Assembly: GCA_048013815.1 (NCBI GenBank)
Contig: CM106585.1
Location: forward strand, 14,322,001 to 14,386,000
DNA: 64,000 nt
Source: Setoptus koraiensis
Taxonomy: Eukaryota > Animalia > Arthropoda
Direction of reading: 5' to 3'
The notes below the pieces were generated by a model, which ran no database searches, was not told the DNA's origin, and saw nothing but the letters and a program-made list of their open reading frames with translations. Shown here in pieces: positions 2,110 through 50,559 of the stretch (the first letter of the stretch is position 1; the number at the start of each line of letters is the position of its first letter). A program made the translations under genes and the position numbers.

Positions 2110-4010
2110 TAAGCACACAGATTTACGAAAACACGATTAAGGGGAAAACTCTATGAACTTTTTTGCTGCGAAAGGGGGAAAGAATGAAAATTGCATCTGT
2201 AAAGACCGGCTCGCTCCGCTCACCCGGCCTAAAAAAATGTTTTTGCGACCACCCTTTAAGTCCAAAAACTCAAGTCCAAGTCGTGAGCGCAGTGAACTTG
2301 ACAGCTGAACTGAGCTCTCGCGCGTTGGACTTGGCTGTTGGACTGGGTCCTCGTACAGTGGAACGGCTTGTTGAACCGAGAACTGGCTCGTTGGACTTCA
2401 TTGTCGGACTCAAGTTCTCGCACATTGGACTAGGTTGTTAGACTCACAAGTCCGTCAGGGGCGCTACAATCGCTGAAAAGAAATGCACTGCCAAGGCAGA
2501 GTCGGTGCTGTGGTGTGCAGTCTGAAATTCAGTTCAAGTCTCAGCTCCAAGTTCAACTTGGCACAGTCAAGTCCTGTGCTGTGTGTGTTTTTTCCAATGG
2601 CTTTCGCCCATTTCCTTTTTTTTTACGCCAGAGGTGCAGCGGGCGCTCAGGAGAGCACAGCCGAGGGTAAAGTGTATCGATAAATGTTTCAACTGGTTGA
2701 CGTTACTCAACAGATAGCTAGCAAACAACTAGAGGAGCTGCGATCACTGCACTCACTACTCTGACGGCAGTTCATCACTGGCAGTTTACTCACAAAACAG
2801 CTATACAGCATCACACACTGCAACTGACGCTCACTCACACTGCATATGAAAATCTGAGTGCGCCGCCCTTGCGGCTTCAAAAAGAAATGAGAGAAACGCA
2901 CACAGTACTGTGTGCGTTTTTTCCAATACACATCTTCGAAGTTCACCAATAATCCGCTAGGGCGGCGTTCTTGGATTTTTAATAGCAGTACACCTGTATA
3001 CCAGTCCGACCTGGAGTCGGGACTTGGGTGCTCTGAGTCAGCGACTTGGCCAGCCAAATCGAACATCCAGTCCGATGGCGCTAATACAAGTCGAGTCCTC
3101 ATCTTTGGATAGACATACAGAAAAGAACTACAGAATAGAATAGCATATGCTAGTTTCGTTGTAGCCGTCGTGTTGTCTTGTTGTTCCTTGCCAACGTTTG
3201 CCCCAATGAAAGAGAAAAAAGGGGGGAGCCAAAAAGAGAGCCTTGTTCATCACATTTCATCACATAATGGTTCTGCAAGATTTGTTCTTCCAATAGAGAG
3301 AGGGAGAAAGAGAGACAGAGGAAGAGAGACAGGGAAAGAGAGCGAAAACGACTGTTGCTATTACTAAGGATATTGATAATCATTTACATATGCAACTACA
3401 CTGATCGAACGACAACATATCGAACCAAAATCGACAAATCACAACCATTTCTTATAGAAGGATATAATCAAGGTCTACACTGACACGCACACTCACACAC
3501 AACCACAAACACGCAAACACAATCGTTGTATACGACGACGCTGTTCGCAAATAATAATGGAATCCTTGGATATGGACTTCAATCGAGCAAAAAATGTTAT
3601 TAGGTTTATTATTATTATTATCACTATATTGATGCCGATACGACTATCAAAGACACTAGTATAGATATTATTACCTATTCTATTACCATTGAATATCAAT
3701 CTTACGAAGTAACAGTAGCAATTTCAAATCCGACTTGTGGCAGTTCAAGATTTGGTAGTTCAACCGCTTTCACTGTACCAAAAGAAAAAGTACTAATTAA
3801 TGTAACCATATGGTACTTTCTATAAGTAATCCCTTGAGTCACTTTTTTGGTAGAAGTCAGATTTATATCGTCAACTTTCCCGCTGACGGAGTTCGAGCTC
3901 AAAACAAGGAGTATCAGAACAAGCAATTTAGTACCCACAACGCAACAACAACATCTGCCCCATTCAATAATGACAAATTGAATTCTATTGCCATCTTAGC
4001 CAAAATAAAT

Positions 4011-5546
4011 ATGTTCAGACGGACTCGATGGAAGACTCTACGTATAGTACTGCTTACATCAATTGTTTGGATACTTGCGGGATTTTGTATACTATTCTTT
4101 TATGTTGATTGTATAGGACCCTATGGTTGCGGCAATCAATCAACGTCCTCCTCATCGGCCATACAAAACGGTTCCTCACTCACGGCAGTCTATGGTGCAT
4201 TCTCCGGGCAGAGTCAACAACTTGTCAATTCTAATCAACCAACTGTACGATCTGATCAACAAACAGGTGCCAAAACCCTCAATATCAGAGGGCGTCTAAC
4301 TGACCAACTCAAGCTACCACCTTACCAAGATTCACAACTTAAGCTTTGGACCAAACCAGTCTTGAGCCAAAATCCAGCCTCCTGGCCGGGAGAAAGAGGC
4401 AAGGCAGTAGTAATAGGGCCAGAGGAGGAAAAGATCAAAAATGAACTTTTCAAATCGAATCAGTTTAATTTATTGGCCAGTGATAGGATTGCCCTGAACC
4501 GTTCGCTATCCGACGTGCGAATGCCACAGTAAGTATTACAATATGCTATCCACTTTTTGCTTTACACATAATTCCACCATGATCTAAACATCCTCTTATC
4601 ATTATTCTCTCATCGTGACAACAGGTGCCGCAATAAACAATTCCCCGACAAGTTGCCATCAACTTCCATAGTGATAGTGTTCCATAATGAGGCTTGGACA
4701 ACATTGCTACGAACTGTGCATAGTATTATTAGGACATCGCCTCCAGAATTGTTGGATGAGATTATTCTCGTAGACGATGCTAGTGATAGAGAGCATCTTG
4801 GTAACAAACTCGATGATTATACGGCCACTCTAGACACACCCGTCCATGTGATGCGCACCGGCGTCCGCTCTGGCTTGATACGAGCCAGATTGTTGGGTGC
4901 CAAAAAGGCCATTGGTCAAGTGATAACTTTTTTAGACGCTCACTGTGAATGCACTGAAGGCTGGCTACTCCCGCTTCTAAGCCGTCTAGTCGAGGATAGG
5001 TAAGTCATCTCTTGATTTATGTCCAATCGCCTGATTGGAGATTCTGTCTCTTTCTTTCTCTCTATCTCTAGTTAGCGATTATAAGTTTAGTGTGGCGTGA
5101 GATAAACAAACAAACAAACAAAGGAGCGTACCGTTAGGCTTTCGCTAGATTGTGTGTGTGGCGTGAGATAAGAAACTCGAAATGATAGGCTAACCATCTG
5201 TTGCTTTGATCCAATTACTTGCCACAATTGACCAGTTGATTGCTTTCTCTGGGAAGGCTGCTCAATCCTCGTAATCCTAATTGCATGTACACTTTACTTT
5301 TAATGATTGTACATACTACTTGTAGTGTGTACTACTTGTTTGGTACCTATTGACGACCAATCGAATGACCTCTGGCCATCTAAAGCAACAAAAACAATAA
5401 CAATCATCAATCTAAGTCGGCATCTACAATGGAACAAATCTTGTTTACATCGGCAGTGATGTGATTAGTTGCCGAAGATAGATAGATAGGTAGATAGAGA
5501 GAACTGGCTGGCTTTGTATTGCATGTATATATATATATGCTCTCTG

Positions 5547-5587
<41 letters not shown>

Positions 5588-6853
5588 TTATATATAGCAA
5601 CACATTTACAGGGCAGAAGAAGTCCTGTCCTATCTAATATTATTAATACTTAAATCTATTCTCCCTCTTTCTTATGCAGAACAAGAGTTGTTTGTCCTAT
5701 AATTGATGTGATAAGCGATGAAACATTCGAATATATACCAGCATCGGATATGACTTGGGGTGGCTTCAACTGGAAGCTCAACTTCCGTTGGTATAGAGTG
5801 CCACAACGCGAATTGGATCGTCGTAACGGGGATCGATCCCTGCCGGTCAGGTGAGTAGCTGAAGCATGTTGTTTTCTCGTTGTTAAACACATTTACTCAC
5901 AATATTCTCTCTGTTCTGTTTTGTTTCATTGTTGCTGCAATCCTGTGCTGTCTCAATCACATCATCATCATGAATTTTTTAGGACTCCCACCATGGCTGG
6001 CGGTTTGTTTTCCATGGACAAGGAGTATTTTGAATTGTTGGGCAAGTACGATGACGGAATGGACATATGGGGCGGCGAAAATTTGGAATTAAGTTTCAGA
6101 ATCTGGATGTGCGGTGGCTCACTAGAGATAGTCACTTGTTCTCATGTTGGCCACGTATTCAGAAAATCAACACCATATACCTTTCCGGGTGGCACTAGTA
6201 AAATTGTTAATCATAACAATGCACGACTGGCCGATGTCTGGCTAGATGAATGGAAGGACTTCTATTTCGCTATTAATACACCGGCCAAACTGATAGATCG
6301 TGGCGACACAACAGGCAGAAAACAATTGAGACAACAATTACAATGTAAATCATTCAGATGGTACCTACAGAATATTTACCCTGAATCGCCAATGCCACTA
6401 GAATATTACTCATTGGGCGAAATAAAGAACGTTAACACTAATCTATGTTTAGATACATATGGTAGAAAATCTGGCGAGAATGCAGCATTAAGTACGTGCC
6501 ATGGACTGGGTGGTAATCAGGTGTTCGCTTACACTAGGAGAAAACAAATAATGGCCGATGACAATTGTTTGGATGCGCCCAATCAAAAAGGACCTGTCAA
6601 ATTGATAAGATGTCATGGAATGGGCGGCAACCAAGAATGGTTATATAATCATAATGAGCCACAAAAGACTATTGTCCATATAAGGACGGGACTATGTTTA
6701 GATGTGCCACAACAACACAATACAAAAAGCTCTAGTCAACAAGATAAATCCGCCACATCAGCATCTAATCAACCTCAATTACAACCATGTGATGGCAGAC
6801 CCAGTCAGCAATGGAAATTGAAAAATAATTTTGAATGGCAAACAGAATCATGA
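4011..6853 (+). CDS. Pgant5: Polypeptide N-acetylgalactosaminyltransferase, compact copy A (Pgant5/GALNT1-13 subfamily); exons 4011-4528, 4625-4999, 5680-5850, 5983-6853; 644 aa
   Basis: Type II TM anchor ([24 protein letters not shown]), GT1 motif [14 protein letters not shown] motif [27 protein letters not shown]-terminal ricin-B lectin repeats ([11 protein letters not shown]). Three GT-AG introns (4529-4624, 5000-5679, 5851-5982) give a 1935-nt open frame. An in-frame upstream ATG at 3810 makes the start uncertain. Confidence 0.95.
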
Positions 6854-49300: not shown

Positions 49301-49394
49301 AGCGTCAGAGATTCGCGGCCCAACTAGCGGGCCAACTAAAGCCGAAATTGGTGACAAAAAATGCATGTGACATAAATGTTGTTTGTGCACTCAC

Positions 49395-49739
49395 CTGAAA
49401 AATTCCTAGTAGCTAACATGGTGGTTAAAATGGCGCCCTTGAGCTTTCTTCGTGCGTTGAACTTCTTCAAGCAATCAACAGTCTCCTGTCTGTGTAGTGT
49501 GGATGCCACCCTTTCTCTGTTCAAAATCCAGGTATGCTTAAGTGCCTCAGAAGCCGTTATTCTTTTGCCAGGGTTCACCTGTAGCATGAGATTAATGAGA
49601 TTCTTGGCTTCTGGAGTGACTGTGTCCCATTCTGGAGTTGGGTAATCGTAGGCCCCATTTTTTATCTGGGCGTACAAGTTGTACTGGTCCTCGTCCCAAA
49701 AGGGTGGATAGCCGACCAGCAAAATGTAGAGGATCACAC
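49395..49739 (-). CDS. CaMKII: CaMKII copy B, exon 2 (kinase C-lobe end, regulatory segment)
   Basis: [18 protein letters not shown]...[32 protein letters not shown]; acceptor AATAG at 49740-49744, donor GTGAGT at 49394. Confidence 0.95.
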
Positions 49740-49937
49740 CTATTTTGATTTATATTTGTGATACATGGATATTATTTATTATTATTTTTCATTCACGAAA
49801 CGAGGCGACACGACGGGCGTTAGTTTAGGGTGCCAGCATTTCAGTTTACGGGACAGCATTGCATTGAGCTTTTGCCAGGTTGGGCCGGATAATTGGGATT
49901 ATCCGATAACATTTAATTAATATTGTCAAGTACTCAC

Positions 49938-50559
49938 CGCATGCCCAAATGTCCACCGGCTTCCCGTAGGGCTCTTTTTTGATCACCTCTGGCGACAAAT
50001 AACCTGGCGTACCCGCAAATCCGTACCAAGCGTGCTGTTCGCCCTGAACCTCGATGGCGAGACCAAAATCGGCCAATTTAACAGCGGCTCCTTTGGCCTT
50101 GCTGGCCAACAACAGATTCTCTGGCTTCAAGTCTCTATGAACAATATTGTTCAAATGACAATGCTGGACACTCTCTAATATTTGTTGAATACAATGCGAC
50201 GCGTCCGCCTCTGAATAGTATTCTCTAGCCACTATGTCTTCAAATAATTCACCACCTGTAACTAAATCAAATATAAGATAATGAAATGCTTCCTCTTGGA
50301 TGGAATCATGTAAACGGACTATATTTTGATGATTTAATTTCCTACAAATGCGCGCCTCACGTTCTAATTTTTGAAAATCACGACTAGACAATTTTTTGGT
50401 GTTTATTATTTTGGCCGCATACTCTTGGCCAGTAGACCGTTTAACGCATCGTTTCACTATGGAGAAGGCTCCCTTGCCCAGCTCATTGAGAACCTCATAA
50501 TTATCACTGAATCTTGTGGTAATAGCGGGCCCAATGCCGCCCTGGCCCGCGTTCGTCAT
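49938..50559 (-). CDS. CaMKII: CaMKII copy B, coding exon 1 (kinase N-lobe to subdomain IX)
   Basis: ATG at 50559; [65 protein letters not shown]; donor GTGAGT at 49937. Confidence 0.96.

Follow-up and report, generated by a model that had tools for sequence, protein, structure and literature searches.

Evidence for exact, recent loss of two introns from one copy of a young GALNT duplication beside tandem CaMKII paralogs in the mite Setoptus koraiensis

Introduction

Massive and mostly exact intron loss has been described in eriophyoid mites from the genome of Aculops lycopersici, and its authors propose that the losses were mediated by reverse transcriptase (PMC7738191). It has been stated that how and when these introns were lost can be resolved only by comparisons over short evolutionary distances (PMC7738191), and a preprint on Floracarus places most of the intron losses deep in the tree (10.64898/2026.08.24.746826). 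The locus described here, from Setoptus koraiensis, an eriophyoid-type mite, resembles these cases in the exact removal of conserved introns from compact genes of an intron-poor lineage, leaving the protein unchanged. However, the states compared are two copies in one genome, with a dS of about 0.07, whereas the earlier comparisons involve species that are hundreds of millions of years apart. Copies that are ~3% apart, with and without two ancestral introns, provide a comparison over a short distance and show that loss has continued recently.

Reverse-transcriptase-mediated loss proceeds through recombination with spliced cDNA, and is classically biased towards the 3′ end, with adjacent introns removed together. 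Canonical metazoan CaMKII, the second protein of interest at this locus, is built from a kinase, a regulatory segment, a variable linker and a hub.

We analysed 64 kb of genomic DNA (GCA_048013815.1, CM106585.1: 14,322,001–14,386,000, forward strand), and this whole stretch is referred to as the window. A first-pass annotation had read it as a block in the order GALNT(+)…CaMKII(−) that occurs twice, with one copy shrunk about 6-fold.

Results

Self-BLAST of the window revealed two collinear homology blocks on the same strand, far above chance. The first aligns 3776–5887 (copy A) with 10857–20505 (copy B) in seven collinear pieces of 76–98% identity, and the second aligns 8970–9816 of copy A with 49417–50308. 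Mismatches made up 3.1% of the 2,886 aligned bases; the second block scored 87% in BLAST owing to gaps in its intron, as its mismatches number only 36. The high identity reported earlier, which extended to intron ends, was evident in the GALNT blocks (~97%, collinear, intron ends included). Copy B is 4.6 times the length of copy A and is longer in every aligned block. Positions 5888–8969 of copy A have no assembled counterpart in copy B in the self-BLAST of the window, and an assembled twin exists for only 2.1 kb of the 6 kb of copy A. Homology begins at 3776 and 10857, and the sequences preceding these positions are unrelated to each other. Allelic haplotigs are expected to have homologous flanks, which are absent here, and we therefore rejected the possibility that A and B are haplotigs. 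A search for functional RNA in the retained introns revealed no Rfam family and no tRNA in the window.

GALNT copy A (3810–6853, + strand) was predicted by a splice model to comprise exons 3810–4528, 4625–4999, 5680–5850 and 5983–6853, with 711 intact codons. Its introns of 96, 680 and 132 bp are all at ancestral positions, as matched to Capitella and Apolygus. Pfam domains Glycos_transf_2 (PF00535), Glyco_transf_7C (PF02709) and Ricin_B (PF00652) were detected, in keeping with a polypeptide GalNAc-transferase (GT27), which has a GT-A catalytic domain and a ricin-type lectin domain. In copy B, the first five exons were found (10891–11812, 16755–16923, 17783–17949, 18166–18373 and 20298–20468; 10891–20468, + strand) in an open frame, and the catalytic domain is assembled for its first part only. 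Predicted introns of copy B measure 4942, 859, 216, 1924 and >578 bp, and all splice sites are GT..AG. The catalytic exons of A and B differ by 12 synonymous changes and 2 that are non-synonymous (neutrality rejected at P = 1.3e-6), giving a dS of 0.077 and an omega of 0.048. As judged from these sequences, GALNT has undergone a young duplication, with an age corresponding to a dS of about 0.06–0.08, and purifying selection acts on the catalytic exons of both copies (omega 0.05).

Two whole introns of GALNT-B are absent to the base from GALNT-A. The 4,942-bp intron S1 (11813–16754, + strand), which interrupts the Val of KP|VL in phase 1, is missing at 4359/4360, and the 216-bp intron S3 (17950–18165, + strand), also in phase 1 and following DASDR, is missing at 4791/4792. 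Both junctions are base-exact, with a 2-bp AG at each as the sole ambiguity. Capitella has an acceptor at the position and phase of S1, seen in an extended Capitella exon, and an intron of the bug Apolygus occupies the position and phase of S3. Since both positions are ancestral, copy A lost both introns precisely, after the duplication; S1 and S3 are thus true and exact losses from A of recent date, and B preserves the state that preceded them. One relative, L003, has the A state at S0 (described below), S1 and S3, as well as a 96-bp intron 1 like that of A, so that parallel losses are needed in the L003 lineage. Intron gain in B had been considered, as L003 and Capitella seemed to be devoid of these introns, but was dropped when Apolygus and the extended Capitella exon showed that both positions are ancestral.

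The base-exact deletions, which left exons and frame untouched, are as expected of reverse-transcriptase-mediated loss. Unlike the classical pattern, however, it was the first and third introns that disappeared from GALNT-A, while the 96-bp second intron between them and the two 3′ introns (4 and 5) were kept. The lost introns are therefore non-adjacent and one of them is the 5′-most, showing neither adjacency nor a 3′ bias. We tentatively suggest, at somewhat less than even odds, that introns are still being lost exactly in this mite, in a process that can be followed inside a single genome and in a pattern that classic 3′-biased cDNA recombination does not predict, pointing to very short conversion patches or another form of splice-site-guided deletion, for which the unconverted twin B serves as a control.

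The remaining segments specific to B comprise one exonic and several intronic stretches. S0 (11395–11751, + strand) is a low-complexity, Asn/Ser-rich stem segment of 357 bp that is in frame in GALNT-B and absent from both copy A and L003. Comparison of junctions placed S2, S4 and S5 inside introns, at 16965–17736, 18772–19415 and 19682–20266 (region 16965–20266, + strand), and at these junctions copy A carries 9, 2 and 36 unrelated filler bases, respectively. S6 (20506–21046, + strand) is intron sequence of B that runs up to an assembly gap, as similarity between the copies ends at 5887 in A and 20505 in B. Whole introns, intron middles and an exon segment are therefore all missing from the compact copy, as had been described. 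A transposon (introner-like) origin of the B-only segments was rejected, since no TIRs, TSDs, transposase or TE ORFs were present, nor further copies in the 64-kb window. The direction of change is demonstrated for S1 and S3 only; at S2, S4, S5 and S0, copy A is the shorter, and these are given as presence or absence.

Copy A ends on the right in a pure (CA)42 tract followed by an imperfect CA-rich tract (9815–10000), and an AT-rich spacer of 31% GC (10001–10856), which resembles nothing else in the window, separates it from copy B. The junction between A and B thus comprises 1,040 bp of CA repeat and spacer. A single contig from run X2 extends from 9958, inside the CA tract, to 10915, and no contig in the DNA runs X1, X2 and X5 crosses either the (CA)n tract (9804–10009) or the gap. 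Tracts of (CA)n are present at six places in the window. The gap itself (21047–21546, 500 N) lies inside an intron of GALNT-B, so that no reading frame crosses it, and GC content is about 30–38% before the gap and 44–54% after it.

Read-derived contigs provided information on the missing part of copy B. Contigs break at 5884 in 3/3 DNA runs, and in X1 and X2 the core at 5884–9018 is covered ~2x as deeply as unique sequence, with unique sequence, core and kinase at about 1 : 2 : 3; word depth in contigs is no direct measure of copy number. A 66-nt junction piece specific to A is at single-copy depth. In X5, depths were erratic and a 2:1 pattern was absent. Depth in X1 and X2, along with the break in all runs, suggests that the GALNT 3′ exon, CIR1 and an intact compact CaMKII of copy B lie unassembled in the gap. 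Each of the three DNA runs, from different samples, contains A-specific, B-specific and spacer-to-B contigs. Copy A is not the product of transcript contamination, since it retains three introns and intergenic DNA, and 0.88–0.94 of its words are present in the DNA runs. Variant contigs in X1 that might have been taken for alleles were either copy B or CaMKII-L cross-mapped, or mixed A/B contigs produced by bubble popping.

Downstream of GALNT-A, the single-exon gene CIR1 (7410–8324, + strand; Cir_N domain) ends 135 bp from the stop of a convergent, compact CaMKII, here called CaMKII-S (8460–9815, − strand). CaMKII-S of copy A consists of a partial kinase exon K1 (9815–9446), a 153-bp intron, and one exon (9292–8463) that includes K2, the linker and the hub. 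It extends from codon 82 to the end, the first 81 codons being cut off at the (CA)42 tract. Two RNA contigs map to it (8538–8800 and 8852–9116). Its hub is 70% identical to that of Aceria tosichella CaMKII and belongs to the S clade of the hub tree (support 99/91). A tail-to-tail pair of CIR1 and a compact, intron-poor CaMKII is also found in the relatives L001 and L002, and hence that part was not shrunk here; the arrangement of compact CaMKII and CIR1 is ancestral.

The CaMKII beyond the gap, CaMKII-L, is predicted to span 27 kb (23558–50559, − strand), with K1 at 50559–49938, K2 at 49739–49403, a linker exon from 28134 and a hub exon in the ORF 24796–23558. Kinase, regulatory segment and hub (CaMKII_AD) all occur in the expected order, with phases that agree across the predicted joins, and the predicted join of K2 to the linker exon is in frame. 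Like canonical metazoan CaMKII, it has a kinase, a regulatory end (ATRNFS), a KES..TTIE linker exon, a hub and intron positions shared with Lottia, namely those after WACG and after ATRNFS; CaMKII-L keeps ancestral introns that CaMKII-S lacks. Unlike the canonical protein, its hub (24742–23978) carries a Q/A-rich loop insert of 130 residues and is followed by a long Q-rich tail, and a second, compact paralog adjoins the gene. This hub, the only one past the gap, shows 55–65% protein identity and no DNA similarity to the hub of copy A, and in the hub tree it belongs to an H clade (100/99) that is distinct both from the S clade and from a clade of canonical hubs (99/97). The Aceria-like contig L007 bears a kinase exon with 98.5% identity to Aceria CaMKII, and on it a gene with the hub insert lies 1.3 kb upstream of a compact CaMKII on the same strand. 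The linker exon is conserved among the window, L007 and L009. A search of the 10 kb preceding the hub-insert gene of L007 revealed no kinase exons, and a metagenome scan did not recover an Aceria-like contig upstream of that gene. A further candidate, L012, turned out to be an insect-type CaMKII. On this evidence CaMKII-L appears to be a separate, old and long paralog of ancestral structure.

Discussion

The first-pass annotation held that the block from GALNT to CaMKII is present twice, in before and after states of compaction. The duplication and the side-by-side comparison hold for the 5′ part of GALNT, a young duplicate with two exact intron losses in A, but not for the CaMKII and CIR1 part, as the CaMKII beyond the gap is a separate, old gene. 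That part made up most of the supposed size difference, and the 40-kb extent and 6-fold ratio were consequently not upheld; the real contrast, within one gene, is between 2.1 kb and 9.6 kb.

We propose the following account, to which we assign a probability of roughly 0.65 as a whole. Two tandem CaMKII paralogs, the long CaMKII-L and the compact CaMKII-S lying tail-to-tail with CIR1, would predate the split from Aceria. A local head-to-tail duplication may then have copied a region that begins 34 bp before the GALNT start codon and reaches codon 82 of CaMKII-S. The left copy, A, would have kept the native upstream region of GALNT and been left with a decapitated CaMKII-S, and the right copy, B, would start at 10857 and end within the assembly gap. 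After the duplication (dS about 0.06–0.08), GALNT-A would have lost two ancestral introns exactly, most likely by short-patch recombination with spliced cDNA. Outside the block duplication, the kinase exons of CaMKII-S and CaMKII-L may have evolved in concert by gene conversion.

It could instead be argued that the whole of 10857–50307 is an uncompacted twin of 3776–9816, with A shrunk ~6-fold over GALNT, CIR1 and CaMKII, as the order GALNT(+)…CaMKII(−) recurs and the kinase exons share 95.5% DNA identity, parts of their intron included. This is highly improbable, given that the hub of B falls in a different, old hub family, that the hub-insert gene adjoins a compact CaMKII in the Aceria-like contig as well, that the compact CaMKII–CIR1 pair already exists in relatives, that ancestral introns are present in the long gene and absent from the compact one, and that dS is unequal in K1 and K2 (p = 0.008). 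Equally, A and B might not be neighbours on the chromosome, being haplotigs or the product of a false join, made at the (CA)n tract or during scaffolding. The stretches that no contig spans (9804–10009 and the gap), the jump in GC at the gap, its 500 N, which denote a scaffolding join, and the (CA)n tracts at six sites in the window would allow this. We nevertheless consider such an artefact improbable, since copies with unrelated flanks cannot be alleles, contigs specific to A, to B and to the spacer and B recur in three DNA runs from different samples, and CaMKII-L precedes CaMKII-S across the gap, as it does in the Aceria-like contig.

The extent and direction of the change in GALNT also need to be considered. 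If only the 5′ part of GALNT was copied, B would be a truncated fragment, the gap would hide nothing more and some other cause would have to account for the twofold depth seen in the core; just five exons of B are assembled, contig depth is unreliable, and X5 lacks the 2:1 pattern. We find this unlikely, as an omega of 0.05 in the catalytic exons of B fits a dead fragment poorly, a contig break exactly at 5884 in every DNA run needs a second sequence entering there, and the A-specific junction piece is at single-copy depth. Another possibility is that B expanded while A did not shrink, in which case the stem segment of 357 bp, the middles of introns and the small indels would be insertions in B. 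L003 lacks S0 and has a short intron 1 like that of A, S0 is low-complexity sequence of a type that grows by slippage, and the hub of CaMKII-L also shows Q-rich expansions. Such expansion is ruled out for both whole introns, these being ancestral; for the rest it seems a less probable course, as no B-only segment bears the hallmarks of a TE, and the greater length of B in each of the blocks is what deletion bias in a streamlining lineage would predict. With S1 and S3 lost from copy A, the GALNT pair represents a modest instance of genome streamlining still under way. Use of the locus as a case of 6-fold compaction would compare two different genes.

The kinase exons of CaMKII have a history of their own. 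Those of CaMKII-S and CaMKII-L show 95.5% DNA identity within this genome and 74–76% identity to L002. The dS per segment, which had been set as a check, was 0.08 in K1 and 0.29 in K2, and the hubs show no DNA similarity. The difference between K1 and K2 led us to reject a single age for all of the homology. Gene conversion is the most likely source of the likeness between the kinase exons of the two genes. Their tandem arrangement, one long and one compact, with similar kinase exons and long-diverged hubs, provides a separate lead for CaMKII biology.

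Intron loss in one of two GALNT copies

Comparison of the window with itself revealed just two non-microsatellite homologies, both collinear and on the same strand. Block 1 relates positions 3776-5887 of copy A, the left copy, to 10857-20505 of copy B, the right copy, in seven pieces, and block 2 relates 8970-9816 to 49417-50308. Copy A differed from its counterparts at 89 of 2,886 aligned bases (3.1%). The duplication proposed in the first-pass annotation is real. Only 36 mismatches were found in block 2, whose BLAST identity of 87% reflects gaps in a short intron. Positions 5888-8969 of copy A had no DNA-level match anywhere in the assembled window, which contains a single gap of 500 N (21047-21546).

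Pfam matches and splice modelling placed three genes in copy A. GALNT-A is intact, with 711 codons in four forward-strand exons (3810-4528, 4625-4999, 5680-5850 and 5983-6853). CIR1 is a single forward-strand exon (7410-8324) and is convergent with the compact CaMKII-S on the reverse strand (9815-8463), which begins at codon 82, abutting a (CA)42 tract. In copy B, five GALNT exons are assembled on the forward strand (10891-11812, 16755-16923, 17783-17949, 18166-18373 and 20298-20468), with an open frame and GT..AG at all splice sites, followed by intron sequence as far as the gap.

Over the comparable span GALNT-A occupies 2,112 bp and GALNT-B 9,649 bp, a ratio of 4.6. The compaction claimed for this gene is genuine. 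Two entire introns, 4,942 and 216 bp long, were present in B only, their absence from A being exact to the base with AG alone ambiguous. Also restricted to B were three segments of 549-763 bp within introns common to both copies, where the A junctions hold 2-36 unrelated filler bases, and an in-frame 357-bp Asn/Ser-rich segment of the stem. B was longer in each aligned block, with 139 extra bases as against 26 in A. A search of the B-only segments for inverted repeats, target duplications, transposon ORFs and, within the 64-kb window, further copies found none, and neither an Rfam family nor a tRNA was found in them. Comparison of the catalytic exons gave 12 synonymous and 2 non-synonymous changes between the copies, with a dS of 0.077 and an omega of 0.048 (P = 1.3e-6 against neutrality), so that both GALNT copies have evolved under constraint. 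The first 48 bases of retained intron 1 (4529-4576 and 16924-16971) carry 7 differences (15%), compared to 1.5-3% in other non-coding blocks.

The two whole introns could represent either gain in B or loss from A. Gain was considered because the contig of a relative, L003 (74-84% identical in protein), has neither of the B-only introns, and Capitella teleta has none where B carries the 216-bp one. This was overturned by the bug Apolygus, which has a phase 1 intron following DASDR, exactly where the 216-bp intron lies, and by Capitella itself, where the exon read upstream of the annotated start reaches a clear phase 1 acceptor within the Val of a VL dipeptide, matching the 4.9-kb intron in position and phase. 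All three introns kept in GALNT-A also coincide with Capitella intron positions. The Apolygus and Capitella matches thus settle the direction of change for both introns, which are ancestral and were lost to the base by GALNT-A. The L003 lineage lost both independently, along with two introns still present in both A and B. Because GALNT-A lacks the first and third introns and retains the 96-bp second one, the pattern does not fit classic 3′-biased cDNA recombination, and this mismatch is what we find most intriguing about the locus.

The GALNT gene of L003 (9404-12049) has a 96-bp intron at the site of GALNT-A intron 1, and the other four introns seen here are gone; its lectin domain has two introns without counterpart in the window mite. 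Intron loss is therefore lineage-specific and ongoing in the group. The annotated start codon of the Capitella GALNT protein model P0144 (440-500 of contig L005) lies inside an exon. Upstream of this codon, frame and homology persist for 12 codons as far as a good acceptor, and the public model is therefore 5′-truncated.

Two distinct CaMKII genes

We then analyzed the hub (the CaMKII association domain) encoded beyond the gap at 23978-24742. It forms part of a 413-codon ORF, one of its loops being interrupted by a Q-rich insert of 130 codons and its tail also being rich in Q, and shares 51-57% protein identity with the CaMKII hub of Aceria tosichella and 55-65% with the hub of copy A; the latter two are 70% identical. 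An exhaustive protein search identified a hub family in which this loop carries an insert. A tree of hubs resolved three well-supported groups, namely the insert family including the 23978-24742 hub (100/99), the hubs of compact genes including those of copy A and Aceria (99/91), and canonical hubs (99/97). The 100/99 clade comprises 15 hubs whose loop insert is large and Q/A-rich, and the proteins recovered are unnamed.

In the Aceria-like contig L007, which has a kinase exon 98.5% identical to that of Aceria CaMKII, a compact CaMKII is preceded on the same strand, at a distance of 1.3 kb, by a hub-insert gene, the relative order found in the window. A linker exon upstream of the hub (GRSM.AKNKED...KES.D) is conserved in L007, in L009 (a further hub locus) and in the window, with its start at 28134 in the last of these. 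The second kinase exon (K2) of the long gene ends in phase 1 after ATRNFS with a strong donor at 49403, and would join this linker exon in frame. In Lottia, introns occur at the two corresponding sites, one following WACG and the other following ATRNFS, and the linker opens in the same manner. Taken together, the hub family, the linker exon, the in-frame fit and the Lottia introns indicate that 50559-23558 on the reverse strand is one predicted long gene, CaMKII-L, of ancestral structure, and that CaMKII-S adjoining CIR1 is a second, old paralog. The annotation, which had described about 6-fold shrinkage relative to a block of at least 40 kb, is wrong on this point because it pairs these two different genes.

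Its proposal that the CaMKII/CIR1 part had shrunk in this genome also fails. In relatives, CaMKII-S is already compact and tail-to-tail with CIR1, as a 474-codon single exon in L002 and with one short intron in L001, and its compactness was therefore not produced here. Eriophyoid-type mites appear to hold two CaMKII genes in tandem, a long one with an insert hub and a compact one just downstream (window 23558-50559, reverse strand; L007 9087-12883; L009 3067-4789). In the 21 kb that separate K2 from the linker exon, a 437-codon open frame at 36115-37428 (reverse strand) contains hydrophobic stretches and Q-rich runs, and it matched nothing in Pfam, L007 or L009. This frame may represent an exon or a nested gene, or be without significance.

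The kinase exons of CaMKII-S and CaMKII-L are 95.5% identical in DNA within this genome, but only 74-76% identical to those of L002, while the hubs show the reverse pattern. The similarity between 8970-9816 and 49417-50308 stops at the ATRNFS donor of CaMKII-L, with no DNA similarity past K2, and dS between the two genes was 0.083 in K1, the other kinase exon, and 0.288 in K2 (p = 0.008). We infer that gene conversion confined to the kinase exons has probably kept the two genes in concerted evolution.

Support from sequencing runs and the probable content of the gap

Several runs from different samples and studies contain 0.88-0.98 of the words of 5400-11400, and we placed contigs from three DNA runs (X1, X2 and X5) and one RNA run on this region. 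X1 and X2 yielded an identical 3,135-bp contig over 5884-9018, and X5 a contig over 5884-9203. One contig of X2 extends from 9958, within the CA tract, across the spacer as far as 10915, a stretch also covered by X1 and X5. Independent DNA samples therefore contain copy A, the spacer and copy B, and copy A is not an RNA-only product. No contig among the DNA and RNA runs examined spans 9804-10009, and the join of copy A to the spacer is thus putative. Loose contig ends at 10857 and 5649 were rejected as separate sequence, being copies A and B cross-mapped, as was an X1 variant at 8994-9157, which is cross-mapped CaMKII-L.

Word depth in X2 was 83-122 for A-specific and B-specific pieces and the spacer, 164 for a piece common to A and B, 226 for the core (5884-9018) and 329 for the kinase contig, with corresponding values of 84, 120-148, 188 and 315 in X1 and erratic values in X5, although contig word depth does not equal copy number. 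All three DNA runs had a contig break at exactly 5884, and the A-specific connecting piece (5848-5913) had single-copy depth, which indicates a second sequence entering at 5884. The kinase contigs extend at least 287 letters past 9803, too far for pure repeat in a 31-word graph. We put at about 0.6 the probability that the gap contains the unassembled rest of copy B, nearly identical to A and comprising the last GALNT exon, CIR1 and an intact CaMKII-S.

Only two contigs, both thin, were obtained from the RNA run (8538-8800 and 8852-9116), and they show that a compact-type CaMKII is transcribed across its intron-less K2-to-linker region. Contigs of X5, which bears the same organism label and comes from another sample and study, diverge to non-window sequence at 6550, 9174, 9626, 10494 and 10743, with erratic depths; these departures may reflect structural variation between strains or artefacts of amplification. 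GC content is approximately 30-42% left of the gap and 44-58% right of it, a step of more than 10 points across 21047-21546. The left flank is AT-rich GALNT-B intron, and the sequence to the right, 3′ of CaMKII-L, is GC-rich with GT and GTT/GCC repeats.
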